Assembly (NCBI GenBank): GCA_964199315.1
Contig: OZ116709.1
Span: forward strand, 2,666,001-2,730,000
Direction: 5' to 3'
DNA: 64,000 nt
Origin: Orbicella franksi
Lineage: Eukaryota
Made by a program: the position numbers and the translations under genes. The notes beneath the pieces are model-generated. The model ran no database searches. It was not told where the DNA came from and worked only from the letters and a program-made list of their open reading frames with translations. Positions 11,957 through 54,574 of this stretch are shown piece by piece. How positions within the stretch are numbered: position 1 is the first letter of the stretch; every line of letters begins with the position of its first letter.

Positions 11957-13087
11957 ATGATCCTATCGTTACTATTAAGAAGCACGCTGTTGCTTCTTGT
12001 AGTAAACCATTCTATTGCCCAAGAATGGTACACGCAAGACAATTATGGACCAGAGTTTTACTCGCCGAGTATGGTCAAAGATACATCTCCTTCATTTTTG
12101 GAGAAGAGAGAAGCTGAAATTTTAGCCAATGAGTCAAAATTAGTTTATCTGCCGGATTACGCGTCAAATATCCGTCAAAAACGAGACTTAAATGATGCTG
12201 ACAACGAACAGCACAGTAGTGACGTCACTGAGTACACTCCAAATGACATTTCAGGTCCCGTGGATGAGCTGTCCGATAGTAATGTACAATCTGTTGACCT
12301 GAACACCTCCCCAGATACAAACGATCAAAGGGTCACCAACAACAGCTATGAATATGCTAACAGTGATACTAGTAACAGCTACGAATACCCGCAGAGTGAC
12401 GACAACAGCGGTGTCAACAGTGATATTAACAGCGATGTCAACAGTGATACCAACAGTCATGTCAACAGTGAAGCCAACAGTGAGGTCAACAGTGAAGCCA
12501 ACAGTGATGTCAACAGTGATGAAAGCATTGTTACAAGTAGTGTTACCAACAGTGATGTCAACAGTGAAGTAAACAGTGATGCCAACATTGTTACCGACAG
12601 TGAAGTCAACAGTGATGCAAACATTGATACCAACAATGTTACCAACAGTGATGTCAACAGCAATGTCAACAATGTTACCAATAGCGAAACCAACTTTTAT
12701 GGCAATGAAACAACCGACCAAAGGTTGGAAGACCGTGCTAATGACGTCATGGAAGAACAAGATGAGCCAGCAAATTATGCAGACACGTCTGATACAAAAG
12801 CGGCCGGTAACAACGAGGTGATACAAGAAGGCTCAGGGGAATCTTCTTTTCAAGCAGATGATAGCCATACGATAAACAAAGAGGAAAATGATAGCAAACC
12901 AGAAGGAGAACATGCAGTCGAGGCTGACCAAAGCAATCAAAGGAAAATTGTTGGAAAAAAACAAGAAAACAAAACAAGAACAGCAACATCATCATCAACA
13001 ACAACAACAACAACAAGCCCGAATGAAAGTGGCAGTGGAAGCATTCGGAGAGATCAAGAAGATGATGATGATGATGATGATGATGAA

Positions 13088-13121
<34 letters not shown>

Positions 13122-14571
13122 GGGTGAAAGGTGACGAGGACGAAGACGAAGATGAGCAGCCCGTGAAAAGACAAAATTTGGGTACGAAGTTGATGTAGTT
13201 TCAGTTGCAGTGAATAAACATTTTGCCACACAATAAATATATTTACAAATACTTTGATGTTTGTATAAATATATAAGTTAAGGAAGTCCACCTTTACATA
13301 AAAAAAATACTGTCAACAGCATGACAATTTATCTTAATATATAGAGAAGATGTCTTATATCTAGTCTAACATACAGATATCATCATTATTCAGGATGTAT
13401 TCAGGTACCGACAAGGAATAGTGCTTTTGGATATTTTTCTTTGCAGAGTTCTTTGCTGGTGAATTGGTATAAAAATCGACTTCCTTTTACCTTTAATTGA
13501 TTACTTATCATGTATATTATACTGTAGCTTGGGGATTTCCAGGACAGCAGTACGCTTATTCCAATCTACAGTGCTGTCCATCAAATATGATCTGCCCAGG
13601 TTAGTCCCACAGTAATACATGAGATGATGATATTTCCTGTACTCCTCTACACAAAATCCACTCATTTGCGAAGTTTGATACTAAGTATCACAGAATGTAG
13701 TACTTTATTACTATGTATAAAAACTACTCACCCACAAGTATCCGTTCCAGGCACTTGCCTGTAGAACGAAATACCAGGTTTATGACATAAATACCATGAT
13801 ATTTCTGTTCCTTTCCAGGCAAACCACCGTGTGTTCCAAACAACAGTGGTTACAAGGGTTACCAGGGTTACGTCAATTATCCCGGATATCCTAATTACCA
13901 GTCTCCAGCTGCACCAAGCTTTCAGCCTCAAGTAGTCCCCACTCCACCCCAGTACGTAATGACTGCACCACCTGCCAAAGACGGCAAGGCCATTCCAGTG
14001 AAAGCTCGACCAACAGCGGAGCATGCTTCCACAAGGAAGGTGTCCACTGGGAATCACACGGGAAACTCGGGTGCCTTGCCACAAACAAAGGATTTAATTT
14101 CAGATGCGGACGAGTTCGCGGAATATAATGGAACAGAACAAAGCTTTGCAAGGTACAGCTCTAAGCAAAATGAAGAAAAGTACTATAACAGTTCTACCAA
14201 ACACGAAGACGACAAGGAAGATTCTTCTGAGGAGGATGACAACAAAGAATCACAAAAGAAAGAACAAACATCTTCTGATGAACCAGATTACAAGGACGAA
14301 ATCGAGAAAGAAGCTGTTGAGCAAGAGAGAGAAGATGACCGGAAAGCCGAGGAAGAGGGAGACCATAACGACGACAATGATGAAGATGATGATGACGATG
14401 AAGAGGACGAAGATGATGAAGATGAACAGAATGATGACGATGAGGATGAATCGAAGGAGGAGGGACACTCTGAGAATGCTAACACCATGCTAAAGGATGA
14501 CATTAATAACCCCGCTGAACAATCCTTTGCCGTTTCACCCACAGTGCTTCCAGGGATGTGTCCCCCATGTC
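11957..14571 (+). other. Module: signal peptide plus Asp/Glu/Asn/Ser-rich low-complexity region (about 680 aa) with a short Cys/Tyr-rich insert
   Basis: NS(D/E)x tetrapeptide repeats at about 12400-12690. Poly-Asp tracts at about 13057-13120 and 14370-14450. Dibasic sites EKR, RQKR, VKR. Insert [15 protein letters not shown]...[17 protein letters not shown]. Confidence 0.8.
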
Positions 14572-17500
14572 GTGAGTAACACGTGACCTGAGTATCATTA
14601 ATGCATTTGATAATGTAACTTGCAGAGGCTAAGCTTGATCATGTATGATACAATTTCGTGAGTAAAATAGATAACAAATCTACAAGTCAATTTCTTGCTT
14701 TGTGAAGGCCTTCGTTGTCGGAGCCAAGTAACTGAGTTAATAAACGAAGCTTTAGGGTTTAACTTCCTAGTCAAGGAAACATATTAAAATAATTTTTTTA
14801 ATTTGATTATTTTTTTTCGCACTGTTTCAGCGTCTTTGAACTGTAACATTTAGTAATGCTCACTTTAAAAGACACCATTTTTACAGCGTAAAGCAAAACA
14901 ACAGGCTAACATTTGACTGGAGTTGCCACATCTTTCGAAACGCTAATATTTTTTTTCTTTTCTTCTACAGCCAAGCCAACAAAAGCACAAGGTAATAAAT
15001 ATGATTGATTCAGCATTAACATAAACCTTATTAAACGTGAAAGTGTGCTGAAATGCTTGTTACCTGTTATCTTACAACTTGCAAATAGTCAAAAAATTTG
15101 AAATAATGAGTAAGAGGAAATTTATTTATCTTAAGACAGAACATCGCATAGCTAACTTCAAAACCGGATTTAAAAACTGGAATCTCAAAAAGAAAGTGTA
15201 CATTCTTACCTTTTTTCCTCCTTTTTTCGCATTCTCTTTTCTCGTCAGCTTGTAGTGCAAAAATTGACCTAGCTTTATTGATCGATGGCTCTTCAAGTGT
15301 TGAAAGATACGGCGTCGGAAACTTCCGAAGGATTATCGACTTTGTCCGAGGTCTCACGATGGGCTTCGCAATCTCACGAAGAAACACGCGAGTGTCCTTG
15401 ATAGTCTACGGAACAAGACCGAAAATGATCTTCAATTTCCGCAGGTTAGTCCGGAGCAAAATTATTTCGTAGTGTATATTTTTGAATGAAGAGGGGCTTA
15501 GAACTAGCGGAAAGCAAAAAACTTTCAGCGCTTGTTTTTACTTCTCAGCAGAAACGTGGTCATTACGAAAAGCCCATATATTCCCAAAGAGGCCACAATC
15601 TCTGTCACCAGCGTAATAGGAACATGGACTTCGCATAATGAACCATTCACTTAGCGATTAACGTCTATCATTATATTGGGCTTGTTTTAAAACTATACCA
15701 CTGAAATAGGTACTTCGTCCATACCCACTCGGTCTCCAGTGTTAACGAAGTTTATTTGTGTTTGACTTGCTGCCTGGTTCTGGAAATCTAAATTAGCTGT
15801 AAGCCACATTCAACAAGCAGCTCTTAAACAATTAATTTTGAACATTTCAGATACCGGAGTAACACGCGGTTGTTCACTGGGCTCAATCGAGCCATTTACT
15901 ATCCTCGGACTGGTGCAAGAACAGGGCGCGCTCTTAGCTACGCTTATAGGAGGCTTTTCGTGAGAAGTCGACGCACCCGATCTAACAAAGTTGCGGTAGT
16001 TATCACTGATGGCCGCTCGCTTGATGACGTGCACACTATTTCCAAGCAACTGAGAGCCCGCGGAGTCACGATCTTCTCAGTAGGGGTGGGAAGGTACTTC
16101 AACGCAAGGGAACTTGATTCTATGGCAACTGATCCCGACAAGACTCATGTTTTCACGTCGGATTTTAAGCAGTTGCAGTACATCACCAACGATCTCAAGA
16201 AAGCAATATGCTTGAGTAAGTGTTCTGCCTGCAGAGATTCAGCTAAAGACTTCACACGTTTTTAGAACTTTTAGCTTGTGCTGTAACTTCTGAACTGTGT
16301 GCAGAAAAGCAAAGAAAATTTCATGGTCTGTGATGACTTCAACATTGTCACGTGAAAAAGTAGTTTTTGAGATATTTAGCTACTAAACTGCAAAGAGAAA
16401 ATTCGGTGCAGATTAAAAGGCTTCAGGCGCAGACATTTCTCTTCCAGGAAAATTATTTAGAAACAAAAGGATCACGATGACAACTAATTAGCAACATCAT
16501 TCTGTGGAAGCCTTAAATGTAAAGCCACTGATTAAGATGAGTAAGGATGCTGTCGTTACTGTTTTTGTTTTTTTTACATTGTTTCTTTTCAGGTGTGGGT
16601 GGCACTCTTTCAGTTTCTAAACTGCAGCCATGCGTGTGTGGACCAACCAAACCCGTGGGTCCAACAACTCCAGGTTTGTTCAACTAGTGTATTTCTTATT
16701 AAAGTATTCGATTTAAAAGTAGCCTCAGAAAGTGACATAATTTTCAAAAAATTCTTTGCAGTGTCAAAGACAACAAAGAAGCCCGGAGTTCCAGGAGGCC
16801 CTGGAAGCCCCGGTGGACCCGGAGGTCCGGGTGGTCCAGGAGGCCCCGGTGGACCAGGTGGCCCAGGAGGACCCGGGGGATCTCGCCCTGGTCAAATAAC
16901 AAAACCAACTAAAAATCCACCAGGTACGGAATAAATCATGTTAAAAAGTTTGAATTGCCTTAGTGTCCAGCTTTGGCAATACAGTTGTACTATCGACATG
17001 ACATCGAGCAATTTTTTGCTTCAAAAGGAAACCCCGGCGGTCCAGGAGGGCCGGGAGGTCCTGGTGGGCCAGGAGGTCCGAGTGGACCTGGGGGACCTGG
17101 TGGACCGGGTGGACCGGGAGGTCCAGGAGGTCCAGGTGGCCCGGGTGGACCCGGGGGACCAAAAACAACTCCTAAACCGGGAACAACAACAAAGCCCCCA
17201 GGCAAACCTGGAGGCCCCGGTGGTCCAGGAGGTCCAGGCGGTCCCGGTGGCCCGGGGGGACCAGGCGGACCAACAACCAAGAGGCCAGGTAAGCGTTAGA
17301 ACTAAACCTTTGAAGTAAAAGAGGTCTGGCCAGTTTAGTTACATTGGTCATGAGGTAAGTCCTTATGCATTGTACTATTAATAAACTGTTTTAGATATAT
17401 ATTAAAATTTTGTTTGGTAGCGAAACCTAGAGGACACAAACAAAGGAAATTGAATGAGCGTGTTTGTTCTTTTTTCTTGTTTGTTCCTCTAAGCCTCGCT

Positions 17501-20500
17501 ACTTAGCTGAACTCTAATAAGAGCGTTTAAACTTTTAACTTAAGTGGGCTCCCTTTTGAAATATTATTATCATTAGTAGTAGTATTATTATTATTACTAT
17601 TATTATTGGCCTATTTGCACAATACAGCGTGAAATTTACTACTTCAGTAGATGCTTAATTGTCACAGTTGAATGTCGCGCCTGTAGCTTATGAAGAGAAG
17701 AATTGTATTCACTCCACTCAACATTTTTTCTTGCAGGTAAATCTACACGACCTACGACACCAACTAAACATGCTCCGGGAACACCCGGTGGGCCTGGGGG
17801 ACCTGGTGGCCCCGGAGGACCCGGCGGCCCGGGTGGCCCTGGGGGTCCTGGAGGTCCAGGAGGCCCTGGTGGACCCGGTGGAAAGACCACACCTGTTCCA
17901 GGAAAAACTACCAAACCAACTAAACCCACAAAGAAACCAGGAACTCCCGGAGGTCCAAGTGGGCCAGGCGGTCCCGGTGGGCCAGGAGGACCCGGTGGTC
18001 CGGGAGGTCCGGGAGGTCCGGGTGGTCCGGGGGGACCGGGAGGGCCTTCGACACCTCGTCCTGGAAAAACGACAAAACCAACCAAGCCAACGAAGAAACC
18101 GGGTTCACCGGGTGGTCCGGGAGGTCCCAGTGGACCCGGTGGACCAGGGGGCCCAGGAGGACCAGGCGGTCCTGGAGGTCCCGGAGGACCGGGGGGACCA
18201 GGAGGACCTGGAGGACCGGGTGGTCCAGGAGGACCCGGGGGTCCGGGAGGCCCCACGACAAAACCTTCAAGAGCGCCAACCAAGAAGACCAAGCCAACCA
18301 AAAACCCGCCTGGTAAGCCGGGTGGACCCGGTGGACCAAATGGTCCTGGAGGACCTGGAGGACCCGGTGGTCCGGGCGGCCCAGGAGGTCCCGGGGGACC
18401 AGGAGGACCTGGAGGTAACGTATCAGAACACTTTACATTTGCTTAACATCCTGGATTTCCTTGTCAATGGTATTTGACGCTTTTTCTTGATTTATCCAAT
18501 TTCTCTATGCAATTTTCTCGTTTTCTTTCTTCTACCCACCTTGCGTACGGAGGCTGCGCCCGCAATACGAGTGGCAGTCAAAACTAAGCTGTCCTATTGA
18601 AACGACACTCTAATAGTCTTCTTCCTGGAAGCTAACAAAAATAAAGGCAATGCTTAAGTTGTTTTAGCCTCTTCTAATAATTAACTTGAGAATTCCGGAT
18701 TTAATTTGACGGGGCATGCGATGTGTGGCATCACATTTTGCTAGTTCTCGTTGTTGCTGTTTTGCCATTTGGATACGACTTAGACATATTTTGACTGAAT
18801 TAAGCATCAGCACCATTGTGGGAGGCGACGTGGCCGAATGGTTTGCCCGCCGAACTCCGGATCGGGTCCGGGTTCGAGCCCTGGCGGGAGCCATCAGGTT
18901 GTGTTCTTGAGTACGACACTGAACTCTCACAGTGCCTCTTTCTACCCAGGTGTGTAAATGGGTACCAACGAACATGCTGGGGGGTGACCCCCTGAGTGTG
19001 CTAGCTCCGGGGGTAGTAAAACACTGCTAGTCACTTCATGCTACTGAAACAAGGAAAAGCTCAGGCGATATGGACCACTTGGCCTGACGTCGACTTTACC
19101 TTACGCTGTAATAGTTTTCGAGTCGGAAGATTTCCCCACGAACGATCCTGGGTTATCGACTGAGTTCAGCTAAGTTAACACCCTCCGTGTCCCCGTTAAA
19201 TAATAAAAAGGGATTCCTAATGCTGTCGTTTTTGTACACAAAAATAAGGACGGCCTTTGTCTGTAAAAAATATTGAATTACGTTTGAATTCTTTGACACG
19301 TAAAATTACGCGACAGTGGAAACCCACATGAACAGAACTTCCTGTAACGAGAGAAGCGTTGTTATAATGTTTCAGGACCCGGAGGTCCGGGTGGCCCAGG
19401 AGGTCCCGGTGGTCCTTACGGTCCTACAACAAAGAAGCCAGGTACACCAGGAGGGCCCGGGGGCCCTGGAGGGCCAGGAGGGCCCGGTGGACCCACAACC
19501 AAGCGTCCCGGAAAACCAGGTGGGCCCGGAAAACCGGGTGGTCCTGGAGGACCCGGAGGACCCGGTGGTCCGGGGGGCCCAGGAGGTCCCGGGGGACCAG
19601 GCGGTCCAAATGGTCCTAAAACAACAACACCAAGACCAGGTGTACCGACGAAAAAACCGACAACAAGAAAACCGGGAACCCCAGGGGGACCAGGAGGCCC
19701 CGACGGCCCCGGTGGACCCGGTGGTCCGGGAGGACCAGGTACGTCATGTCTCTCCCAGCAATGTTGTTTAGACACGTTTCCACCTGTTATCAGCTCGATT
19801 ATTTTTTAGAAATTTAGGGAAAAGGAGATCGTATAAACTAGGCAATTGGGAAGTACCTTAAAGACCAAATTTCTCCTTAACAAACAAAGTACATTTCAAG
19901 CACAATACATCTTTACTCATAACCTCAAAAATAACAAAATGTAGTTCCTAAACAGGCAGTAAATTATTATGAGTGCATTTGCTTACCCATGTTCAATGTT
20001 CTTTTTTCAAATAAGGCTATTGTCACATCTCTAGGGTTTGTTTAAACTAAACTTACGTTTCTGATAGAACCTTTGGATAGAATTGTTTGTACAATAACAG
20101 GCTGACGTTTCACGGCCTTTGTCTGCAGAGAAAATGGCACTCAGAGGTCAACTTGCGTTGACCTCTGTTTAGTCCAGGAGCCTGTTTTAATCCTCGGAAC
20201 ACAAAGTAATGTTCATATAGAAAATTTTAAGATTCAAGAAATACTAAAGTTGTTGTACATTAGGCTGATTACCGATCTTTGAACTATTTATCAGCAGTAC
20301 TTGCTTTCTTTTGATAATTGTATATTTAATATCTACAAGAAGATAAACAACCAGTATAACGTAATCATGGCTTAGATTTCGTAATTTAATTTCTACAGAC
20401 ACGTTCTTAAGATTGTATAAAGCTTTCATCTTGTCACACTTTAAATTACTGTTCGTCCATATAGCATTTTGGGGGTGCTCCTAATGCTGAAAAATGGACA

Positions 20501-21224
20501 TTCTTAACAAGCGTATTCTTAGATTCATACGTAAGGACTATAACTCGCCCTATGGTAATTTACTGGATAAAATTAACAAGCGCATTCTTAGATTCATACT
20601 TAAGGACAGTAATTCGCCTTATGGTAATTTACTGGATAAAATTAATTCAAAACCTCTGTACATTAGACGCCTTCAAAAGTTTTTAGTTATACTATAGCTA
20701 TCCAAGATATTTAAGTAATATGTTTGCTCTGCACTCAACAACCTACAGTTTACGCGGTAATTATATTGTCTCTTCCTGATGCGAAAACAACAACTTACGG
20801 CCTGCATTCCTTTTCATATTTAGCTGCTAAATTACGAAACTTTTCCGGATTCGCTTTGAACTTCTACTTTTGCGGACTTTAACTCTTTTCCGTAGCATTG
20901 CAACTTGTCCCTAATTTTATTATGTACATAGTTCAGCTCATTCATAATTTTTAGCATATTTATTGTATAAGTATTGCATTTTGTTATATTTATGTTCTCG
21001 AAGATATTAGCTAATTTTAGCTACTTAAAAATTCGAGAGGAAACAAAGTATATGATGATGATGGTGTCATGTCGACAAGTTGTGAGTTATTTAAACAATA
21101 GCCTCCATTTGGCGCGAAAATATGCTCGGATATGGGTATTTGTCCGCGCACATTATCTGTTCCGAGAAGCGAACAGTTTTCCGAGAGCATAACTCCAGGA
21201 AAACTGTGAGCTTCCAGGGACGGA

Positions 21225-21258
<34 letters not shown>

Positions 21259-24200
21259 CTGCCAACTGGAGGCTATTGTGTTTATTATCCTTCACATATT
21301 TGTCGCAACACGCGCGGTTTTGAAATTGAGGAATATCCTCGGATATTCCCCAGTTTCACCTGGGGAATATTCGGTCACGTGACGTGCTTAGACCAATCGC
21401 GCGAACGAAAATATTTGATGGATTATCAACGTTATTGTCATTTCATTTCTGTACATCAGGGGGACCAAACGGTCCGGGGGGTCCAGGTGGACCGGGCGGA
21501 CCTACGACTGCAAAGCCGGGTGTACCAACCAAACCAACAACTCCAACAAAACGTCGACCACCATACCCAGGAGGACCTGGAGGACCCGGCGGGCCCGGAG
21601 GCCCAGGTGGCCCTGGGGGTCCAGGAGGACCCGGTGGACCCGGTGGACCCAAAACTCCTAAGCCTGGTGTACCAACTAAACCAACCAAGCCAACAAAGCG
21701 ACCAGGCAGACCAGGAGGCCCAGGAGGTCCGGGAGGTCCTGGAGGACCTGCAGGTCCCGGAGGGTCCGGTGGGCCCGGTGGTCCGGGCGGGCCTGGAGGT
21801 CCAGGTGGACCAGGAGGGCCAGGTGTGGTTCATATTTGTTTTAAAATTTGTTGAGAACTGTGGAAAGTTAACTTCAGTTCATGAGCTGGGAGTCCTACAC
21901 ATGACTCCGAGATAATTACAATAGAGTTTGTCAAAGTCGAAGACATGTGCTATTCTTGCGACAGTGTTTCTGATTGTTTATAATGAACATAATGGTTTTA
22001 CTGTCCTAGCGAGACTTACCGCTAACAAGTACATTAGCCTTGCAACATAATGCGATGTGAGGGAATACGGCTCGTTCAACATGTGCACCCAACAACAGAA
22101 ACCCAGTGATTTCATATCATTAATATAATGTCTGTTTTTCACTCTTAACTCGGAGTTTGTACCAGGAAAAATGACTCTGAGAAAGTTAAGAAACGTAATA
22201 GGAATTTGCTTCACTTAATTTATTCTTGCATCAAGGCCAGGGGTGACAGCACTTGAGGCAATACTCTATAATCAGTTAGGGCTTTGATGTGGGGTTGAGG
22301 GGATTGCACGGTAACCGGCATTTGGAGCTTGAGAATGGCAGAGCGACTGTTGATTCATTTATTTAAGGTGGACCTGGCGGACCACCAGCGGGGCAACCAA
22401 CATCGCCAGTGACAGAGAAACCGGGTAAGCCAGGAGGTCCGGCAGGTCCCGGTGGACCTGGCGGACCCGGCGGCCCGGGGGGACCAGGAGGACCAGGAGG
22501 ACCGACTGGACCAACCACGCCGACTAAACACGCTGGGAAACCCGGAGGACCTGGGGGACCGGGAGGACCTGGCGGGCCGGGAGGTCCAGGTGGACCAACA
22601 ACTGGACTACCAGGAAAACCAGGGGGACCAGGTGGACCCGGTGGACCGGGAGGACCGGGAGGACCTGGCGGGCCGGGAGGACCGACAACAAAAACACCAG
22701 GCACTCCAGGTAAGAAAGGAATGAGAAAGATCTGATAATCATGTGGGTGACAAAAGACGTCAAAGGCATACATTATGGCATGCAAGAACAAGAGGTCTCT
22801 GAGACCGTGGGAGTGAAGAGTATTAGGAATAACCCTTCAGTTCAGGCAGTTGTTGCATGACCCATACCAGAAAAAAAAGTTCGAAAATGATCCTGAAATC
22901 TACCCAAAAAGATTTTTTAAAAATGCTGTCTCTAAACTTTAGTTCGCTGTGTGTTGCACTCTGGATTCAATGGTCAGAGTTCGCGTCTCGGCCGTTTAAG
23001 ATAATTATCTTGTCTTTACTCTTTTAGTATTGTTAAGCTATTAACACAAACTTACGATTTGCTAGGTAGCTTCACGCTACGATTTTTGTGTTATATTGGC
23101 TCAGAAAAGGCCACACTTTATCTGCAGAAAGTATTCATAGGAATGTTCATTATTTAGGCGGCCCCGGAGGTCCGGGGGGTCCGGGAGGGCCTGGAGGACC
23201 GGGAGGTCCAGGAGGTCCAGGAGGACCCGGTGGTCCCACCACAAAAAAACCGGGATCACCAGGAGGTCCCGGTGGCCCGGGAGGACCTACTACAAAACCA
23301 CCACCCGGTAAACCGGGTGGCCCAGGAGGACCTGGGGGACCAGGAGGCCCCGGAGGCCCTGGAGGACCCGGCGGACCTGGAGGGCCTGGAGGTCCGACTA
23401 CAAAAAGACCAAAACCAGGAAGAACTACACCCACGACGAAGCCAACTAAAAAGCCTGGACGACCAGGAGGTCCGGGGGGACCTGGAGGTCCAGGGGGACC
23501 CGGAGGTCCAGGAGGCCCAGGTGGCCCAGGAGGACCGGGTGGACCAGGAGGACCAGGTGGGCCCAAGACAACAAAACGACCTCCAGGGAAACCAACCAAA
23601 CCTACCAAGACTCCAGGATCACCGGGAGGGCCAGGAGGTCCCGGAGGGCCCGGAGGACCTGGTGGGCCGGGAGGACCCGGTGGCCCCGGTGGACCTGGAG
23701 GACCAAAGACAAAACCTCCCGGTACTATTACAAAACCGACCAAGTATGCGCCTGGAAATCCCGGCGGGCCTGGAGGTCCGGGCGGACCGGGAGGGCCAGG
23801 CGGGCCAGGAGGACCTGGTGGACCAGGAGGGCCAGCTAAGACTACTCCTAAAACACCCAAGACACCAAAACCAGGTTAGAAAGAATAATAAGGCATTATA
23901 GCCGAGAAATGTGTCAAAATACTAACTGTAAATTTTTCATTATTCTTTCCCCTCTGCCTTGATGGTAATTCAAGTAATGTGACTGCATCTGCATTTTATC
24001 ACATAGAACAGATTTAAGTTGAGTGTGGAAAGTAACTCACATTTGCTTTGGTTTGTGTGCCACTGTCTACGTGAATGTTTTATAAAAATCTCGTTTTTTT
24101 TATTTGGCTTATACAAATCTTACGTTGTCATCCAGTCAGAAGTAAAACCAAAACCAAACGTATCTCTCTCACACGTTTCCCAGTGGTTCAAGTCAACTAC

Positions 24201-45200: not shown

Positions 45201-48200
45201 ACTTACATTTATTCAACAGCTCCCATTAAACCCAGAGCCCGGCCCAGAATTCGGCCTCGAATTCGTCCCAGGCTTCCGCTTCGTCCCAGGCCCCGGCCAG
45301 TAAAACTACCTTTACCAAGGCCAAGAAAACCAGGTTTGTTAAAAATTTCATTTCAGATTAAAAAAATGTCGTATACTTGATGAAAGAAGATGGTGACTTT
45401 TTTAACGATCATGTATGGCTGTTATCAAGACTGTAAGCTCTATGAATCAGCCATCTATCTTGTTTTCAATTTTTTCTAGTCCAGTAAACGTTTAACAAGT
45501 TATTTTGAATTCACTTATTTTTAGGTGTACAAATAAGACCCAGGCTTCGACCAAAGCCGCGACCAGGTATAACAGTGTTGGTTTTTTTGGGTTTATTTTA
45601 CCTTATTATCGGACTCTTGTGTTGACTACTTTGGTGAAAGTGCATACTCTGTTTCTTTAGGAGCAAAATACAGATTCTTTGGACGCTATCGTGCTCCACC
45701 CAAAAAGATACTTGGCAGCCCAACAGTGACGTTCAGAAGTCTGAAGTTTGCAAGAAAGAACTGCCAGCGAGTAGCGCGCATGCGCCGTGCCTGGGCCTTC
45801 GCTTTGCGATTTGGTCGTCAGTGTTACATCGCTCAAAAAAGTCCGCGCAAGTTTACAAAGTTCGGTTTTCCTCGAACGAAAATGCCTGGAGCACTGAAGG
45901 TTTATATCGCTAAAGGTAAATAGGAGACTGGTGTGTTGGGCGCCTTAAAGCATAATAAGAACTTCATAGAAACTATTGAATTATTTGTTTTACTTACTGT
46001 ATGGCGTTATATTAACCCGCACCTAGCCCCATTCATTTCATTGGAGTTATGCATTTCCTTGTCCCTGGGAGTTATATCAGCAGTGATTTGAGGTCCGTCA
46101 CTTGATTTGAAAAAGCATTTCATTTGTGGGGTACAATAACTGGTTTTATTTACAAATTCTTCGTGGCTTTGTTTTTGTTGCCATTGTTATGTGCAGATAT
46201 AAGGTGATATCTGTGTTGTTTTCCAGGAGGTCGTTCCATACCAATAATAAGACCCAGGCCTCGACCCAGACCAAGGCCTTTCCCCCGTCCGAGGCCCCGA
46301 CCGAGACCAGGTAGAGAAACAGTTTCTTGTTAGTTATATCTGCGCTTGTGAAAATTATGCTCTCAAAACAATACAGGTAACCTTTAGAAGTACTTGAGAT
46401 GGAGTGTAATGGATAATGTTTTGAAAGGCAGACCAAAACTCCCCAAGTGCTGGTACAGGCTGCAAACAGTGACATATTTCAGGAAGTTGAGCGAGCAAGA
46501 AGCATGAGATTTCAAGAGCTGGCTCTATTATTTGATATGGAAAATCTTCTTACGGTCCAAAGATATTCTGTGTTTTGAATCATACACTCATTTTGCACTT
46601 ATAATGTTTTCAACTATTCTCTGTTTAAATGCTGTAGTCAATTTACTTAGAGGTAATTAATTTAAATTCATTTTAACATTGTACCTTTTTATAATCTCAC
46701 TGTATATTATTTTTAGAGTGTTTATTGTAGCAAGGGTATTTTGTAAATAATGTTATCCCAATAATTAATTCATTTGTAATTAATTTTCACGACCCCACAA
46801 GCTTTGAGCTTTAAATCTTATCGTGTTTAAATAAAGAATACGTACGTATGTATGTATACTTCATATTGTTCCTTCTCTCACTACACTAAGTGATCCATTT
46901 ACAATGCGAGCAAAACTAAACAGTAGTTTGTTTATGCTTGTTTGTCTCAGGACGCAAAACGTACAGGTACAGCGGACTCTACCGACCACCACCAAAGAGA
47001 ATGCTGGGAAGTCCTATTAGGAAATTTAGAAGCCGACTTTTCGCACGCAGACGGTGTGAAAAAATAGCAAGATCAGGCAGATATCGAGCATACGCCTTAC
47101 AATATGGCCGTTACTGTTATGTTGCTCGGTTAACAAGTAGAAAGTTTACCAGATATGGACGCAGCGTATCCAGGAGACCCAGTGCTCTTAAAGTCTTCAT
47201 AAGAACCAGTGGTACGTTTTCCAACAAATACTATGTGGGGCTTACTTTGTAACTAGAACGTTAAGGATTGCCAGAGAGATTTACTAGAATAAGATTTTAT
47301 CAAAAGAGACGACCGAGCAAAATTGGTGTACAGCTTTACAGACCACTATGGAAGCTAACATTGTTTACAAAATCCATTTGCTCAACTGAGCAATTTTGCA
47401 ACAAGGCCAACCTTTAAAACTAAGCTGTCACAGATTAAGACCCCATGAGCAGCTTAAAACGAGGAAAATATCACTTTTTACATTCTAAGTGTTATAGTTT
47501 ATCTCCTGGCTGATTCAATACTGCCGCAAACTTGAGCAACGTCTTACACTGACCGTTTTCAGTTAGCAACTAGTAGCTATTTTGCTGGTTCTAATGCTGT
47601 ACATTAACTTGTGCATCTGTTATCTTTGTATTTAGGAGGCATTCTCAGACCTAGACCTCGAATCAGACCTCGACCTCGAATAAGGCCTCGACCCAGAATT
47701 CGACCCAGACCTCGAATCAGACCTCGACCTCGAATAAGACCTCGACCTCGAATCAGACCTCGACCCAGAATTCGACCCAGACCTCGAATCAGACCTCGTC
47801 CAAGGCCTCGGTTACCAGGTATTTTTTGTCTTCTGCAACCTTGGCAGGTCAAACATGGAAACCTAAACAGATTCGTTTTTTCCTTCTCTTAGGAAGAAGA
47901 AGAGTTGTCCGCAAATATCTTGGAAGCTTCCGAGCTCCACCGAGACTGGGACGACCAGTGCGCACCTTCAGACGTCGAACATACGTTGTGCGCTCGTGTT
48001 TCCGTTTAGCCCGAGCGCAAAGGGCAAGAGCTTTTGCCATCCGAACAGGACAACGAGGAGTCAAGTGTTACTTGTCGAAAATGACTTCGGTTAAGTTTAC
48101 AAGACTCGGCAAAACTCGATTTGGAGGCCTTAAGGTTTACGTTTTGAGAAGAGGTAATTTACCAACATTTAATGTGTCAGCTAAAACAGTTTCTACGTTA

Positions 48201-50438
48201 AAACAAATAACGTTTCCATCAAGTTTACACGCCCCTTACTGACTGTTCGACTTCTTTAGCCGGGTACACTCGGACTGAATGAAAATTATTCACAGATTGC
48301 AGCGAAAATAAAAAAATTGAACTTTATTTCAATATCAAATGCTCCATTGCACTAAGACAATTGAAGTTGAAATTTTCCACGATTTCTACAACGAAATACG
48401 TTTTCGTTTTCGTTGTATAATGGTCTCGGTTATCTTCTTTAAGGTTTTTTAAAGTTTACATCACTCGTCTTGCTAGCATGGTCATATCTACTAAGCCTGT
48501 GGAACTGGGTCCCCTATTGTAACCTAGCTCACTAAGCCAAAGTAAGAAAAAAAGACTTCTGTTGTAGGCAGGAGCCCGTGGCCCGGAGCCTCCATATGTA
48601 TTACACCCTTGAGTCAACATGGGCTCCTGTTATATGTAATGAATAAGCTATGAAGTGCGTAGTTAACAGACTATCCCTCAATATCTCCTAATTCAGGCTC
48701 ACCAAGACCAAGAATAACACCCCGAGTGAGACCACGAATCAGGCCTCGCCCCAGACCTTCACGTCGCGTATGGAACTATCGTCGCCTTGGTACTTATAGA
48801 GTTCCACGTGGCCGTTCTTCCCCAGGGCGCAGATACTTAGGTACGGTCAAACCAAGAATAAATCCCACCAAACAGTGCGCTCTCACGGCGCGGAAGAGAC
48901 GCTACCGCTTCTTTGGTGTACGAAGTAGACGCTACTGTTACGGAGCAAGAATTCGGATACCGCTGACCAGATTTGGCCGAACAACTGGTCTTAGTGGAAT
49001 GGCTGTTTACAAGATCGGAAGAGGTAAGTCTAAAATACTGGAGTTCCACGTGTAGATTTTTGACGTGACGAGACGTGGTCGTAATTTGTTTCAATTGAAT
49101 TTTCATGCTTCCCAGGTCCCCTTAGACCAAGACCGAGAGTGGCAGGCTGGCACTACCGCTATGTAGGCCGCTTCAAATCACTCGCCCCCAAGCGCTTGGG
49201 CCGGTTTGTTGGGCGGATAACGGGAACTAAGAAAGTGTTTAAATGTGCGCGCACTGCTAGGAAGATGGGTTTCCGCGCGTTTGCTTTGCGTAACCGAGGA
49301 GATTGTTACGTGTCGAGATATTCATCAACTTACTCCACTAAAAAGCGTTTGTTTGGACGCTTCAGAGGAATTTCTGGTACACCACGTGCCATAGATGCTT
49401 ATGTGATCGGAAAAGGTAAGACAGATATAGTGTGGTTAAGATATTTCTAGTAAAGAGCACGGATAAGTGTCATTCTGGCAAAACTTCGTTTGGTCTTCCA
49501 CGAGTTTCTAATTTGTTTTTGATAACAAAAAAAAAAAACTGCGGACACTAAAGAATACTCTAATTAGACATGGCACCGTGACAGCTCGTCCTGCTGCTTA
49601 GCAACTCTGGTGACAAAACAAACACGGGTCCTGTCGTGCCTGCTGTCGTCCATTCTCCAAAATGAGATTTTGTTTTTCACTAGTAGAAACTGGCTCCACC
49701 GACTGCAACGCGTACAGTCTGTTCAGAAATAGACCGAAGACAATACGTAGCGACCAATATTTTCACAGAACATGTCAGAAAACATAGTCTACAACGCTTT
49801 TTCAGAAAGTTGTAAGAACTGTTCAGCCTTGTTATATTTGTTAAGTGTTTTTCAAAGCGTGCCATTCAACTCAATTGTTAGTCAATCAACTTAAAATTAT
49901 CCCAGTCGTGGCCCAAGGCAAAGTGAAGCGAATATCCCTAATTAATACATTTTGAACGTAGTGGAATCGCTTTAGTTGACTATCACTCTTGAAAATAAAA
50001 CTGTTATTTGTTTCTTTCCAAGGTCGTTTTAAGCCTCCCCCCAGACCTCGTAAAGGAGGTTCTGTTTGGCATTACCGCTGGCTTGGACGTTTCCGGTCAC
50101 TAAAAGCACGAGGTCTGGGAAGGAGATTAGGCAGAGTGACAGGGCGAAAGAAAGTGTTCAGCTGTGCTATGCTGGCAAAACGCAATGGTTATAAAGCATT
50201 CGCTTTGCGCCGACGCGGTATCTGTTATGGGACTCGTTCATCTAGAGCTTACACATCCAAGCCAGTTATCAAGGGCCGCTTTAGAGCTGGTGCAGGAGGA
50301 GGACGATTCATTGATACTTACATAATAGGGCGAGGTATGTCATGCTAGTATTTTAGCTGATGTAAAAATTTCACAGGAACGAACAGTTCAAAAAACAGTT
50401 GTGGAGCGCAGTCAATACCAACTTAGAAATTTGCAGTG

Positions 50439-50484
<46 letters not shown>

Positions 50485-53400
50485 GATAAATGTCAACAAG
50501 ACGACTTTTTCGTTTCTTGGTTTTCTGTCAAGCTATTTACTGTTAGAATACAGTTTAGGCTGGATATTTGTACACTGAGATGTGTTAGTCTTATTTCAAT
50601 GCTTCGTTAATTATCAGAACACGTTCACTTGATGTTGTCGTCAATTTATTCCGTACATACGTTTTCTTCTAGGTCATTACAGACGGCCATTACGAAAAGG
50701 CAAGTACTATATTTGAAGGTTCATTTTCAATCAGGTTTTGTATCTGTATCAAAAGATTCCAAAGATTTGTCAATCTTTGGCTTTTTAGGCTTTTGTGCAT
50801 ATAGAAAGAAAACAAACCAAAAACTTCAAATTGCTACAATCCCGGTTGATAAATCGAAAATTTAATTGTTATATGAAGTGTCAACTAAATGGACACTGAA
50901 TTTTTACCATAGGTGCGGACGTGTGGTATATGTTCAACTGAAACTAAAATCAGTAGTGACACATAACGTATATGAAATAAGTCAACATGTGAACTGCAGG
51001 CGACATAGAAACGGGTTAGGAAAAGAGTTCAATTCCCGACGGGATTCGAGCCTACGACCTTTGAAATTTCTGGTGCAAAAGCTCTACATAGCTATGAAAC
51101 TGCGGAGGCTCAATCACCACTACAAAACCAAGACATCCTTATTTGATCTAATTTAATTTTCTTTCTAAAGGAGTTAGAGGTCGCTCTAGAAAAACAAGGC
51201 AACGAAGAAGAAAGATGATAAGAGCAGTTAGAAGAAAGGTCAGAAGAATTAAACGAAAGAGGGCACGGATAGCAAAAACTAGAACACTAGAAAGAAGGAT
51301 AAAAACACGTGTTAGACGACTAAGAGGTCTGAGGAGGAAGGCTGTGCGAACTGCGCAACGGGTAAGGAGTTTGAGACGATTAAGGAAACTTAGACTACTG
51401 CGACTGGCAAGAAAAGCGAAACTTGCTTTGACCAGGAGAATACGGCAGATGAAGAGGAGAATCCGTGCACGGAAATTACGGCTAAGGCGACAGTTACAAC
51501 GCGTGCGAGCAGCAAGACGTCGGGCGAGAATACGACGAGCAAGAAGAAGAGCTATGCAGCTGTTGAAATTGCGAATGAGAAGGCGTTTGCAAAGACTGCG
51601 ACTGTTGGCTCAACAGAGGAGGGCGCGTGCACTCAGAATGGCCAGGTTACAACGTTTGAGACGGTATCGAATGTTGGCCAGGTTACAAGCGAGGCAGAGA
51701 GCACAGAGGAGACGAATGATGTCGCAAATCAGACGAAGAATGCTTCTTATGCGACGGAAATTAGCTCTGAAGCAAAGAGCTCTTAGAGCTCGATTCCAAA
51801 GTAGACGACAGAGGGCTGCGCGGTTACGACTCCTGTCATATAGAATAAGGGTTCGTCAAAGAAGAATGAGCAGTCAGCTGTCACAAATCAGGAGAGGGCT
51901 GATAGCCTTATCAAAAAGAATGGTGTATTACAGGCGTTTGAGGCGTTACAAACTCCTGGCAAGACTGCGAGTTTACAGGCAACAGCAGATGAAAAGAGCG
52001 AGCATGGTTCGAGTCAGGTGGTTCAGATATCAAAAGCAGTTAGCGGCCATCAGAACCAAACAAAGAATGCTAGCGCTGAGGCAACGACGTGCTCTTCAGA
52101 AGTTTCAGGCATTTCAAAGAAACAGAAGATTGATGTTCATGCAACAACAGCAGAAACTCAGAAAATTATTGCAGACGATGAATTCACGTCGAGTTCGAGG
52201 TGAGTGAGTTTAATTGAAATTCTTTGATTGAGATTACGCTGTTTATAATGCTTTGTGGGTGTTGATGTGGTGGGGTCGCTTATTGGAATGAGGACCGAGT
52301 TGGAATAGAATCCAGCCTTGCTAAACGCGAATCTATCCGCGAGTGCTTTAAGTATTTCCACAAAAAAGACGAAATTCGTCAAAAAAAAAAATTGTGAATC
52401 ACGTTTGAACCATTCTACGACGGCCACATGGAAATGAACAAGTCATTGTACAGAGACGCTATCCAGTGAACTGTTAACTAAAATTGTGCTTAACATTTCA
52501 ATGCAGCTGGGAAGAAGCGAGGAGATATTCTAAACAAGGAGCTAAAGAGGAAGAATTCATCCAAACAGATAAAAAGAGGACCTAACACTGGTAAGAAGGT
52601 GGTTAAAAATTTTTTGAGAAGTAAATCTCTGTGATCAGTTATTAAACAGACGCACGGTAACATGGAATCTATCTGTTTCATATAATTAAAAAAACGATAT
52701 AAAATATAAATGACGTCATCTAGATATATACGTTTATCCTCTGATTGCTCATAAGTAAGAACCAATCAAAATGCGAGAATAATTTGACTTATCGTGTATA
52801 TTATATAAAACTCGTTTGACCGGTATGACCATGACATCTGATTGGTTCACAGCCAAGCTTATCTTCTCTCGCTTGATAAGCCCGACACCACCCTGAAGGT
52901 TGGGCGGTCAGTTAACCCCGCTACAATATACACATCTCTTTTTAACACTTATGTAATATTCGATGATAAAAGTCTTAAAACAATACCACGCATGCATAAC
53001 CAATTATTCTCCCACAAAATCTCTCGTTTACCAAAATGACATGCATCTCATTAAACTAGTTTTGGATTGACAAGTCATTATTTCAGTGCTTATCACTTCA
53101 TGTAAAACCAAGTGATCTAGTTATCCGAGATGTGCTGCTATTGTGGATTAAATTAAAGTTCTATGTGGCTCGATTTTCGGTTTACCCTTCAAAGCACGTT
53201 ATTATGGAAGACTATAAATGGAATTTTCCCAACATTTCGTTTTCAGTTCCAAAAGAGTTCCATTCAGCAGATTACTTCTGGTCGTTTGAAGACTCTGAAG
53301 GTAATCAATCCGATGATGCTGTTCGGAAGCGTGCAGCGAAGCTTATGGGAGGATCGCTTGTTGTTGCGACAAGTGATCGAGGTCACGTGGCAGACACTGG

Positions 53401-54574
53401 TAAACCCAGAGGTTGGATCTCCCTTGGAGACTTTAAAGGTGATAAGAGTCAAATATTTTCGTTCGCGCGCGATTGGTCTAAAACGCGACACGTAACTGAC
53501 TATTACCCGACTAAAACTTGGGGATGTCCGAGTGATATTCCCCAGTTGTCAAAACTGCGTGTGTTGCGAAAAATATTTGAAAGATGAATAAGGAAATCTT
53601 GGTGGTGAAAACACGATGAGGTTCTCACCGTCTTGACTGATGTTTTTTCTCAACAGGAAAGTGCTTCAGCGACCCGGATCGGTGTAGAGATCAAGGAATG
53701 ACAGTAATGGCGTCCCTGAAACTGGATAAGGAATATTTCCATAAGAAATCTAGCACCTACTTCCTATCAAGCGGAGGTCAAACTACCAAGGCTCGAGGAT
53801 TTGCTTTCCTGCATCTTCTCGGCCGCTACATCGTAATACTCAGCACAAAAGACAAACAATGGACACTGGAAGCTCGAGATCTTCCAGAAGGATGGGCCAA
53901 CGTAGCCATTACTTGGAAAAAGGCCGGTTTACTGAAGATGTATGTAAATGGAAAGGAAGTGGCCAGTGGAGAAGCTATGAGTGTTTCAAGGCCAAAGGAT
54001 CAGTACTCGAGCTTTGAAGTTGGGCGGCCGAATAATTCTCACTCACCAAACTTTAGAGTGCCTTTAGAAATAGACAACATTGCTCTCTGGGAAAAAGCTC
54101 TCGCAAGCAAGGAAATTAGCGCATTGGCCAAGAAAGGTATTGAAAATTTAAGTGGACTATAGCTTTCCTTTTTTTCTAAATTACCTTTGACAAAAATTGA
54201 AAACAAGCAGTGAAAGGAGCTGATTACCGAAAAACGGCAATGACTAAGCATAATTAAATACGCATTTTATGAATGGTCTGGGATGAAAAATGAAAACTGG
54301 ATTCCATTCTTAGCCATGTTCGATCAGCTTTAAGGTTACCACTTATGTAACATAGAAATTGTCTGAAGTCTTTCACAATCGACACTTACTCATATATTCA
54401 TATTTTACAATAGCTTTATGTTTTTTTCATTTCTTTGCTTCTTTTTATTTTCAAAATATCACTCATCTTTTCTATATCTGTTATACATAAATAGCTTGAC
54501 TTTGCTAATAAACTCACTCTATCTTCCATTTAGATTTAACGAGAGCGTCCAAACAAGAGGCAATTAAAGAATAA
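11957..54574 (+). CDS. Giant secreted multi-block protein (about 6,157 aa, 60 coding exons): acidic region, vWA, (GGP)n, vWA, 9x LamG-like, 2x vWA, 7x Arg-rich WSC-like, Arg-rich helix, LamG/pentraxin-like
   Basis: Signal peptide [21 protein letters not shown]. Manual exons: 11957-13181, 13528-13599, 13819-14571, 14971-14991, 15249-15444, 15851-16215, 16593-16673, 16762-16923, 17028-17288, 17737-18414, 19376-19738, 21460-21822, 22368-22709, 23158-23874, 24948-25565, 25727-25825, 26661-27191, 27801-27848, 28114-28743, 29128-29169, 29729-30358, 31043-31093, 31267-31905, 32471-32503, 32584-33059, 33328-33493, 33905-33937, 34091-34720, 35324-35386, 35947-36585, 36864-36920, 37097-37747, 38312-38356, 38777-39415, 39761-39820, 40023-40655, 41045-41086, 41483-41654, 42320-42675, 42952-42984, 43140-43169, 43440-43967, 44482-44526, 44669-44932, 45220-45333, 45525-45566, 45661-45915, 46227-46310, 46951-47211, 47636-47818, 47893-48153, 48697-49023, 49116-49415, 50023-50334, 50673-50699, 51171-52199, 52507-52590, 53247-53438, 53657-54136, 54534-54574. 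Sum 18,474 nt, phases compatible throughout, ends TAA overlapping AATAAA. Only one signal peptide was found in the span. It could still be more than one transcript. Confidence 0.8.
15249..16215 (+). other. Module: vWA domain 1 with intact MIDAS
   Basis: [16 protein letters not shown]...ARTGRAL...VVITDGRS...IFSVGVG...KAIC; two exons joined by a phase-2 intron. Confidence 0.9.
18818..19104 (+). mobile_element. tRNA-derived SINE
   Basis: Head GGCGACGTGGCCGAATGGTT...GGTTCGAGCCC (A/B-box-like), body GTTGTGTTCTTGAGTACGACAC...GTGTGTAAATGGGTACC...CTTCATGCTACTGAAAC, tail GACTTTACCTTAC. Intronic. Confidence 0.75.
20494..20697 (+). mobile_element. Probable non-LTR retrotransposon 3' ORF fragment containing a 69-bp tandem duplication
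   Basis: Peptide [23 protein letters not shown] occurs twice (units start at 20504 and 20573), followed by [15 protein letters not shown]. Intronic; the LINE assignment is by resemblance only. Confidence 0.4.
21093..21283. repeat. Palindromic element
   Basis: AAACAATAGCCTCCA...AAAATATGCTCGGATAT...TTGTCC...CATTATC mirrored by GATAATG...GGACAAATATCCGAGCATATTTT...TGGAGGCTATTGTGTTT. Confidence 0.75.
26345..26533. mobile_element. MITE with GGCC termini flanked by TAA (PIF/Harbinger-like by end structure)
   Basis: Left TAAGGCCCTGGTCAAACGTCGAACTTC...TGAGACGAAC; right GTTCGTCTCA...GAAGTCTGACGTTTCTACCTGGGCCTAA. Confidence 0.6.
26661..27191 (+). other. Module: vWA domain 2 (degenerate MIDAS)
   Basis: [16 protein letters not shown]...DVRIGLV...KTGKAL...ILLTVGKS...IFSIGV...KAC; single exon. 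Confidence 0.88.
30861..30974. repeat. Palindromic element
   Basis: AACAATTATTCCAT...TTGGATATGAAGTGAT..TAACCAAC mirrored by GTTGGTTA..ATCACTTCATATCCAA...ATGGAATAATTGTT. Confidence 0.8.
35745..35817 (+). tRNA. tRNA-Lys(CTT), intronic; two stem mismatches, possibly a pseudogene
   Basis: GCCCGGCTAGCTCAGTCGGTAGAGCATGAGACT-CTT-AATCTCAGGGTCGTGGGTTCGAGCCCAACGTTGCGCG, 73 nt, followed by TTTTT. One C:C mismatch in the acceptor stem and one in the T stem. Confidence 0.85.
36687..36718 (+). pseudogene. Isolated 3' half of tRNA-Lys(CTT)
   Basis: CAGGGTCGTGGGTTCGAGCCCCACGTTGGGCG followed by AA and a T11 run; no 5' half upstream. Confidence 0.8.
41483..43967 (+). other. Module: vWA domains 3 (41483-42675) and 4 (43440-43967), both with degenerate MIDAS
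   Basis: [14 protein letters not shown]...ARIGLVSYS...RTGAAL...VITHD...KAC, and [15 protein letters not shown]...TRFGMVEFS...LGKAL...VVSVGIG...KAS. Confidence 0.87.
41885..42205. mobile_element. MITE inside the vWA3 intron
   Basis: Left AGGGAGTTTAAGAAAACGACGAC; right CGTCGCCGTCGTGATTACTTTAACTCCCT (imperfect inverted match). Confidence 0.65.
44238..44399. mobile_element. Tc1/mariner-like MITE (TACAGT...ACTGTA)
   Basis: Inverted ends TACAGTACAGCCCCTATTAA / TTAATAGGGGATCAACTGTA, with internal GGCCAC/GTGGCC repeats. Confidence 0.65.
44669..50334 (+). other. Module: seven Arg-rich two-Cys repeats (degenerate WSC-like) with Pro-Arg linker exons, about 800 aa
   Basis: Repeat exons at 44669, 45661, 46951, 47893, 48697, 49116 and 50023. 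Shared pattern YR..G.(Y/F)R...R.LG...C...AR....AFA.R....C(Y/F)......F...G.......V(Y/F). Confidence 0.8.
50443..50481 (+). repeat. (AG)n microsatellite
   Basis: About 19 AG units, intronic. Confidence 0.95.
51171..52199 (+). other. Module: 343-aa Arg-rich, Pro-free, predicted helical segment in a single exon
   Basis: Acceptor TTTCTAAAG at 51170 and donor GTGAGT at 52200. Roughly one third Arg, interspersed with L/M/I/A/Q; one Glu and no Asp. Confidence 0.85.
53247..54136 (+). other. Module: C-terminal LamG/pentraxin-like domain of a different subtype
   Basis: YFWSFE...[19 protein letters not shown]...SSGG...W.NVAITW...LKMYVNG...[11 protein letters not shown]; two exons. Confidence 0.75.

Follow-up and report, generated by a model that had tools for sequence, protein, structure and literature searches.

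The 64,000-nucleotide window analysed here comes from the stony coral Orbicella franksi (assembly GCA_964199315.1, contig OZ116709.1, positions 2,666,001 to 2,730,000), and its + strand very probably holds a single giant gene between positions 11957 and 54574. The encoded chain begins with a signal peptide, a short pro-region with three dibasic sites, an acidic head, a first VWA domain (VWA1), a (Gly-Gly-Pro)n block (GGP block) and a second VWA domain (VWA2). It continues with nine Laminin_G_3 modules (LamG1 to LamG9), VWA3, VWA4, seven modules of predicted WSC fold, an arginine-rich helix and a terminal Laminin_G_3 module. We consider with moderate confidence that this is a gene conserved among Scleractinia, whose product is a secreted mosaic extracellular protein acting as a scaffold that binds polyanions and glycans.

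All positions refer to the whole window, which contains no N. The + strand of 11957-54574 carries dozens of open stretches with module-like translations. They were joined by dynamic programming using codon log-odds and donor and acceptor weight matrices, retrained once, and the model was then curated with RNA and cross-species data. It comprises 59 exons and 18,402 coding bases, from an ATG at 11957 to a stop at 54572-54574, and encodes 6,133 residues with no internal stop. The original prediction of one frame leading from a single signal peptide to one stop thus stands, with its 60 exons and 6,150 residues replaced by these figures. The chosen splice sites have mean scores of +3.8 (donors) and +4.75 (acceptors), against −3.8 for all GT and −4.9 for all AG dinucleotides of the window. 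Phase 1-1 is found in 51 of the 57 internal exons. The other six encode VWA1, LamG4 and VWA3, each of these domains being divided over two exons, so that every module and every linker starts and ends in phase 1. With one signal-peptide-like N-terminus and no membrane anchor, the protein appears to be secreted. It contains 50 Cys in about 6,100 residues, mostly two per module, and 3.1% Tyr overall.

Homologous exons are present in many coral assemblies, including those of Desmophyllum (robust clade) and Porites (complex clade), and the giant gene has so far been found only in stony corals, in both major clades. An O. faveolata scaffold is 98% identical to the window. Two further coral loci (L004 and L005) keep the order of GGP exons, linker, VWA2, linker, LamG1, linker, LamG2 and onward, while exons 11-58, together with most of the linker microexons, have colinear counterparts at the locus of Desmophyllum pertusum (L012). 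The fastest-evolving parts are the acidic exons (28-49% identity) and the arginine-rich exon (42-58% with three other corals, aligned without internal gaps), and here length, charge and gap-free alignment are still kept. All public annotations inspected split or truncate the locus or place it partly on the wrong strand. That of Desmophyllum (L012:1-47219) gives three + strand genes of 1,629+, 2,024 and 683 residues, 24-62 nt apart, the middle one (P0238, KAJ7376140.1, 2,024 residues) spanning VWA2 to WSC6. A Porites model of 2,247 residues spans LamG to VWA, and in the O. faveolata RefSeq the VWA2 exon is a 186-residue 'collagen alpha-1(XII) chain-like' protein.

A HMMER search of the protein library with LamG1 gave no giant orthologue, returning only single-exon open reading frames (ORFs) and distant multi-LamG proteins. 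When exon 2, VWA2 and the arginine-rich exon served as queries in word-indexed searches (for the last, among the matches listed), genomic single-exon ORFs came up but no spliced products. No anemone orthologue turned up in the library searches, anemone genomes not having been searched directly. In Nematostella the Laminin_G_3 module is best matched by non-basic proteins 683-705 residues long that have another architecture. As the original prediction had supposed, no named or characterised protein with the full architecture was found in protein, structure-atlas and literature searches, the last of which covered spirocyst and skeletal proteomes, desmocytes, GGP repeats, coral Pro/Arg peptides and the accessions, and gave nothing matching.

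The 3′ quarter of the gene is spliced and polyadenylated in adult poly(A) RNA. Junctions were taken from contigs of four poly(A) runs of one study on adult colonies, and eight of them lie between 48836 and about 54600. Seven are GT-AG (49023/49116, 49415/50023, 50334/50673, 52199/52507, 52590/53247, 53438/53657 and 54136/54534) and one, 50699/51171, is GC-AG. Junctions 53438/53657 and 54136/54534 were seen in four runs, the contigs ending at about 54600, and a single contig of 2,089 nt spans 50124 to about 54600. These junctions, from 49023 to 54534, bear out the last exon as originally proposed (54534-54574, 13 residues), in which the TAA stop lies inside an AATAAA at 54570. A 27 nt microexon encoding HYRRPLRK (50673-50699) is present in spliced contigs of all four runs, is followed by the GC-AG intron and has 100% protein identity in L012. 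The arginine-rich exon (51171-52199) is covered end to end by RNA contigs, and a Lys-rich linker exon of 27 residues (52507-52590) is joined on both sides by the junctions given above. Three of the four runs contain contigs that still carry the intron 52200-52506 (unspliced over 52170-52534), at depths from about one third of that of the spliced form up to almost equal to it. Read-through stops two codons past the arginine-rich exon and would yield a protein without the terminal Laminin_G_3; no poly(A) signal was found inside this intron. As a separate observation, RNA depth at three short intronic stretches (17426-17457, 52550-52950 and 53449-53482) exceeds that of the exons by factors of tens to hundreds, with many loose ends; these stretches are most likely pieces of dispersed repeats that are expressed elsewhere.

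Several of the RNA results weigh against a single long gene. No full-length transcript of 18.4 kb was seen in the RNA data, no reads or contigs joined 5′ and middle exons, and all junctions observed lie downstream of 48836. Over 11700-17699, two deep poly(A) runs yielded no reads. In two 'metatranscriptome' contig sets (X1 and X2) the introns of this same part are as deep as the exons, at a low level and without junctions, and these contigs look like DNA carry-over or pre-mRNA and are no proof of transcription. Word coverage in the RNA runs of one study was 0.36-0.42 at the 3′ end and 0.09-0.14 in the middle, which fits a 3′ bias but equally a shorter 3′ transcript. Along with the separate models of the public annotations, these data could point to several adjacent genes, or to one gene with internal promoters, in which case the head, the GGP repeats, the LamG/VWA part and the WSC/Arg/LamG part would be separate proteins and no acid-to-base copolymer would exist. 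We think this unlikely. No internal exon offers a start codon with a signal peptide, all units run from phase 1 to phase 1, the donor and the microexon that follow the acidic head are both conserved, and so are all inter-block linker microexons among those searchable. Moreover, the splitting of the Desmophyllum locus must be artificial: its 'genes' are no more than 24-62 nt apart, and one of the cuts runs through the exon of VWA2. We therefore retain the one-gene model; internal promoters and isoforms alongside it are possible, since no long transcript was seen and the RNA runs cover the 3′ end better than the middle.

The acidic head (11957-14571) is encoded by two exons. Exon 1 (11957-13181, 408 residues) is an open frame with the start codon and the signal-peptide-like N-terminus, and is strongly negative. 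Exon 2 (13819-14571, 250 residues, net charge −43) forms a second acidic block; it opens with a Tyr/Gly-rich part, includes a conserved acidic stretch of helix-like character and closes with a GMCPPC motif, and it has 22 coral ORF homologues at 37-98% identity. The start of exon 1, its three conserved dibasic sites (FLEKR, RQKR and PVKR) and its terminal 10-residue stretch with the adjoining GT donor are conserved at two other coral loci (L001 and L003). The head as a whole evolves fast, the poly-Asp run and the NSDV-type repeats of exon 1 being lineage-specific; kept across genera are the three dibasic sites, the Tyr/Gly-rich stretch, an acidic 14-residue stretch and the terminal GMCPPC. No Pfam family was found for the acidic exons, exon 1 included, and the word-indexed search with exon 2 gave no named homologue among acidic skeletal proteins such as SAARP and CARP. 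The original prediction had described some 680 N-terminal residues as poly-Asp/Glu, a description that has to be tempered: the head measures 641-658 residues, contains about 25% Asp plus Glu with a net charge of −111, and has one poly-Asp run.

An apparent stop after CPPCR(E/K) of exon 2 is in fact the donor C/GTRAGTA, and in the homologues P0160 and P0162 the donor is kept while the stop is missing. The head is joined to VWA1 by a microexon of 21 nt (14971-14991, phase 1-1) encoding KPTKAQ. In L001 and L003 it is the only conserved island of its intron, with the AG...GTAA sites kept, and since it has no ATG it must splice to an upstream exon. VWA1 itself (15249-15444 and 15851-16215; Pfam VWA E 1.8e-10 and 2.4e-21 for the two exons) is the best-conserved part of the protein, 83-89% identical in distant corals.

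A small linker exon (16593-16673, 26 residues including a Cys, acceptor score 9.8, 80-84% identical in L001, L004 and L005) leads from VWA1 to the GGP block, which comprises about 1,160 residues in eight + strand phase 1-1 exons within 16762-25565 (16762-16923, 17028-17288, 17737-18414, 19376-19738, 21460-21822, 22368-22709, 23158-23874 and 24948-25565). A P/T-rich linker exon of 32 residues (25727-25825; 58-88% in L004, L005 and L012) connects it to VWA2. In the tandem repeats, Gly/Pro blocks of 24-36 residues (runs of 8-12 triplets) alternate about every 50 residues with Lys/Thr/Pro linkers. Hydrophobic residues, Tyr (by eye) and Gln are almost absent from the blocks.

The antisense frame of 16762-25565 is also open. 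It reads (Gly-Pro-Pro)n with Gly/Val/Leu/Phe linkers, and its wobble positions coincide with those of the sense frame. The repeats might accordingly be part of a collagen-like gene that lies on the antisense strand within a large intron, with a + strand protein of about 4,970 residues that skips them, as it could without loss of frame because all eight exons are phase 1-1. The annotation of minus-strand genes over the block in the O. faveolata RefSeq (L009:194-9123, 1,312 residues) and in Porites evermanni (L005:1-7276) speaks against our assignment, and no RNA junctions were seen within the block. The splice and codon evidence nevertheless makes the antisense gene improbable. With weight matrices whose training set was limited to the exons past 26 kb, the + strand donors of the GGP exons score +1 to +6 while the best antisense candidates score −3.8 to +1. 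The wobble of the Gly and Pro codons agrees with the other exons of the gene more closely when the block is read on the + strand, by a margin of 60 nats. Three other genera (L001, L004 and L005) keep the AG/GT boundaries of this strand, and the Desmophyllum annotation places its 1,629-residue gene on the + strand here. Judged from the sequence, the minus-strand 'genes' are probably wrong-strand calls; given the shared wobble positions, collagen homology could mislead an annotation pipeline.

A collagen triple helix was considered for the GGP block and rejected. The (GGP)n runs trivially have the Gly at every third residue that characterizes collagen (PF01391), but Pfam gave nothing for the GGP exons, no family, Collagen included, matching the 225-residue one even at E up to 10, and donors, codon use and conserved boundaries all favour the + strand. 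Because every triplet of the + reading has Gly in one of its X and Y positions, GPP occurring only in the antisense reading, and because Collagen does not match, we infer that the block is a flexible or elastomeric spacer.

The central part of the protein is built from VWA and Laminin_G_3 modules. VWA2 is a single exon (26661-27191; Pfam VWA E 1.8e-27) with coral homologues 55-99% identical. It is followed within 27801-40655 by nine basic Laminin_G_3 modules, each encoded by one exon except the fourth, which is split in two (28114-28743, 29729-30358, 31267-31905, 32584-33059 with 33328-33493, 34091-34720, 35947-36585, 37097-37747, 38777-39415 and 40023-40655). They alternate with proline-rich linker microexons at 27801-27848, 29128-29169, 31043-31093, 32471-32503, 33905-33937, 35324-35386, 36864-36920, 38312-38356 and 39761-39820, of which 32471-32503 and 38312-38356 were placed by splice scores alone and 31043-31093 also resembles a linker of P0238 by eye. 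The nine-module block is colinear with P0238 and L012, most linker microexons included, and also with L004 and L005. A linker (41045-41086) precedes VWA3 (41483-41654 and 42320-42675; Pfam VWA E 5.7e-16), and two more, 42952-42984 and 43140-43169 (the latter by splice scores only), precede VWA4 (43440-43967; E 7.7e-32). This VWA3-VWA4 segment (41045-43967) is conserved in L012 and P0238. The terminal Laminin_G_3, again in two exons (53247-53438 and 53657-54136; E 2.2e-11), is near-neutral and 64-84% identical in L006 and L012.

All four VWA domains (PF00092, E 1.8e-10 to 7.7e-32) exceed the 23.8-bit gathering score, and all ten Laminin_G_3 modules (PF13385, E 1e-11 to 2e-20) exceed that of 27.6 bits. 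Read by eye on the translations, the DxSxS motif of the MIDAS site, the metal site used in metal-dependent ligand binding, is kept only in VWA1 (DGSSS), the corresponding residues being DIAGG in VWA2, ESGRI in VWA3 and DASAN in VWA4; this reading covers the motif only, the distal Thr and Asp residues lying outside it. The coral copies of the Laminin_G_3 exon have a median charge of +10.8 per 100 residues, in agreement with the Arg/Lys enrichment originally noted for these domains, while relatives from other phyla range from about −11 to +2 and are mostly negative. In this comparison, basic copies were found among coral ORFs only.

The C-terminal part begins with seven arginine-rich WSC-like modules and their linkers (44482-50334), conserved in L012 and L008, each module with two conserved Cys. 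The modules lie at 44669-44932, 45661-45915, 46951-47211, 47893-48153, 48697-49023, 49116-49415 and 50023-50334, and Pro/Arg linkers at 44482-44526, 45220-45333, 45525-45566, 46227-46310 and 47636-47818, the last with an RPRPRI repeat. Pfam WSC (PF01822) matched the central region of two of the seven modules at E 0.03-0.08 (13.7 and 14.8 bits), below the gathering score of 27.8 bits, and a profile of the seven modules found nothing among PDB sequences. An AlphaFold2 model from the seven-module alignment has a pLDDT of 92, and a Foldseek search with it returned the WSC region of Kremen, yeast Wsc1 and a WSC-bearing glyoxal oxidase first (TM about 0.66, probability 0.99-1.00 for the best chain of each), followed by PAN/apple domains. 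A canonical WSC domain has about eight cysteines in four disulfides. Here two Cys, one pair, are invariant in the alignment, and the net charge per module is +24 to +34. The seven modules are thus predicted to have the WSC fold, as non-canonical members.

The arginine-rich exon (342 residues; 35% Arg, 14% Leu, 10% Gln; net charge +142) is helical throughout in the AlphaFold2 model, as three long helices with a pLDDT of 83. A coiled coil was rejected, the hydrophobic residues having no 3.5-residue periodicity and no heptad signal. No relatives were found: no Pfam family matched, and the best ESM Atlas score of 0.68 was noise. The originally proposed Arg-rich helix of 343 residues is therefore close to what we find, except that it does not end the chain, being followed by about 260 more residues that include the near-neutral Laminin_G_3.

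The net charge of the first 641 residues is −111 and that of the rest +942, giving +831 in total, to our knowledge among the highest of large secreted proteins. In steps of 300 residues the charge climbs steadily from −58 to +122 and then drops in the terminal Laminin_G_3, so the proposal of an increasingly basic chain downstream of the head applies up to that module. Over the same course the linkers shift from K/T/P-rich to P/R-rich in the translations, as had been noted, and the polarity from acid to base is conserved across coral genera, which supports the idea of one modular secreted precursor with this property. It is otherwise with the proposed charge-neutralising pro-domain, since with −111 against +942 the head is far too small to neutralise the tail. 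The acidic pro-pieces cited for comparison, those of defensins and eosinophil major basic protein, are near-stoichiometric with their cationic cargo. Here the charges are unbalanced and no processing site separates the head from the cationic part: the sole furin-type RX[KR]R site in the first 700 residues is at residue 73, upstream of the acidic block, and no cleavage site lies between exon 2 and VWA1.

Several known systems resemble parts of this protein. Collagens VI, XII and XIV and the matrilins are likewise secreted, with several VWA domains and phase-1 exon modules, and the RefSeq name 'collagen alpha-1(XII) chain-like' is also borne by a related LamG-VWA-LamG model of Acropora palmata. 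Unlike them, the coral protein has no collagen triple helix, FN3 or TSPN, is extremely basic and adds Laminin_G_3, WSC-like modules and the Arg helix. Multi-Laminin_G_3 proteins of Lingula, Ptychodera, Branchiostoma and Nematostella (P0003-P0005, P0010, P0021 and P0024) have the same Laminin_G_3 subtype at about 30-33% identity, share the PNNG..LD and C.Q.Y motifs and tandem copies, and combine WSC and Laminin_G_3 in one chain. Some consist of WSC, F5/8-C and Laminin_G_3 and are PKD/REJ-related in appearance. They differ in charge (about −11 to +2 per 100 residues against about +11 here) and in partner domains, some being transmembrane, and have no acidic head, GGP block or Arg helix. With the WSC domains of Kremen1, yeast Wsc1 and glyoxal oxidase the coral modules share the predicted fold but not the number of Cys pairs or the charge described above.

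Elastin alternates hydrophobic segments with Lys linkers, flagelliform silk is built of GPGGX, and lubricin has mucin-type Thr/Pro/Lys repeats. The Gly/Pro blocks and Lys/Thr/Pro linkers of the coral protein resemble them in composition only, with no sequence homology, and the blocks contain hardly any Tyr, Gln or hydrophobic residues. Opposite charges in one secretory product or granule are also a feature of eosinophil major basic protein, of defensins and of sandcastle-worm cement, but the coral charges are far from balanced. Complex-coacervate marine adhesives are marked by a phosphoserine polyanion, DOPA cross-links and packaging in adhesive glands. The Cys-rich domains of the cnidocyst structural proteins minicollagen, NOWA and cnidoin were not found in Pfam scans of the main exons. 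The building blocks are known, and the whole is a mosaic secreted matrix protein for whose architecture no match was found; three of its parts have no known relative.

We have arranged these data in a model for the action of the protein. It would be exported and trimmed at the dibasic sites, and outside the cell it would form a very long, flexible and strongly cationic scaffold with a net charge of about +830. Anionic glycans, acidic matrix or other polyanions would be held both by charge and by the lectin-type LamG and WSC modules, while the VWA domains would dock the scaffold to other matrix proteins and the (GGP)n/KTP segment would form a spacer that is extensible and probably O-glycosylated. 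For the acidic head, a role as a distinct second binding end, for calcium or mineral or for head-to-tail contacts, is more likely than one as a neutraliser. We favour a scaffold because in other proteins VWA domains make contacts within the matrix, glycans are ligands of LamG and WSC domains, and polycations associate with polyanions; this dependence on the behaviour of such parts elsewhere also counts against the model.

As to where such a scaffold would act, we place the interface between tissue and skeleton first and rather tentatively. There the head would attach to calcium carbonate or to the acidic skeletal matrix, and sulfated glycans of the calicoblastic matrix or of desmocyte attachments would be the ligands of the cationic lectin part. 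This would suit a gene found so far only in stony corals of both major clades and expressed in adult colonies, with a head rich in Asp and Glu as in acidic skeletal proteins, and skeletal matrix proteomes commonly include VWA and laminin G domains (PMC4890752, PMC3748352). Yet no matching protein is named in the published Acropora skeletal proteome texts searched, the Desmophyllum accession is absent from the skeletal-proteome preprint of that species and from one supplement, the head lacks a named homologue such as SAARP or CARP, and the restriction to stony corals comes from searches not aimed at non-calcifying hexacorals. A cnidocyst product, namely a basic ('acidophilic') spirocyst adhesive packed with the help of the acidic head, seems to us improbable.

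Many cnidocyst proteins have a signal peptide and a short pro-region ending in Lys-Arg. Such sites are seen here after the signal peptide, and the protein is extremely basic and present in hexacorals. Against a spirocyst role, there is no minicollagen-type Cys-rich domain in the main exons scanned with Pfam, with few Cys for such a length, and the head cannot neutralise the tail. Anemones have spirocysts, yet no comparable basic multi-LamG protein is found among the Nematostella matches, whose non-basic, different build weakens the idea. Mucus or mesoglea are possible sites. That the protein is a mucus-borne antimicrobial or bacteria-trapping polycation, with Pro/Arg linkers freed by proteolysis as proline-rich antimicrobial peptides, we regard as very unlikely. 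The RPRPRI-repeat linkers and a 14-residue linker stretch do resemble peptides of the Bac7/PR-39 type, and the acidic pro-region brings to mind the precursors of cathelicidins and defensins. However, no regular processing sites flank the linkers, which are short microexons between folded domains like ordinary hinges, and the literature search gave no coral precedent.

The scaffold model could be carried further, to a bold suggestion that we would not press. The protein might be a scleractinian invention, a single-chain polyampholyte 'block copolymer' whose acidic, calcium-binding head and very large cationic tail, set with lectin modules, would enable it to assemble head to tail or to condense in a coacervate-like manner with acidic glycans, gluing tissue to the aragonite skeleton or structuring the surface mucus. 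Its (GGP)n block would then be a new elastic spacer and its Arg helix a secreted polycation without known relative.

The surroundings of the gene are also of some interest. Downstream on the + strand, ORFs at 57483-58214 and 61766-62323 each contain two SUEL/rhamnose-lectin-like Cys-rich units by eye and belong to one or more separate genes. A SUEL_Lectin gene also follows the orthologous Desmophyllum locus (L012:49644-51246), and the neighbourhood is therefore conserved. Upstream, + strand exons at 2452-2835 and 5520-5876 resemble major-facilitator or organic-ion transporters, and since an upstream ORF of L001 (3260-3607) has a Pfam Sugar_tr match, this neighbour is conserved too.

The large structural proteins in the extracellular materials of reef-building, namely mucus, mesoglea and the matrix between tissue and skeleton, are mostly uncharacterised. 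Because its annotation is fragmented, the gene described here is not recognisable as one protein in proteomic, single-cell or expression studies, and a correct gene model makes the location and the partners of the protein directly testable. For materials science it would provide three unusual natural polymers, (GGP)n with KTP linkers, Pro/Arg hinges and a 342-residue Arg/Leu/Gln helix.

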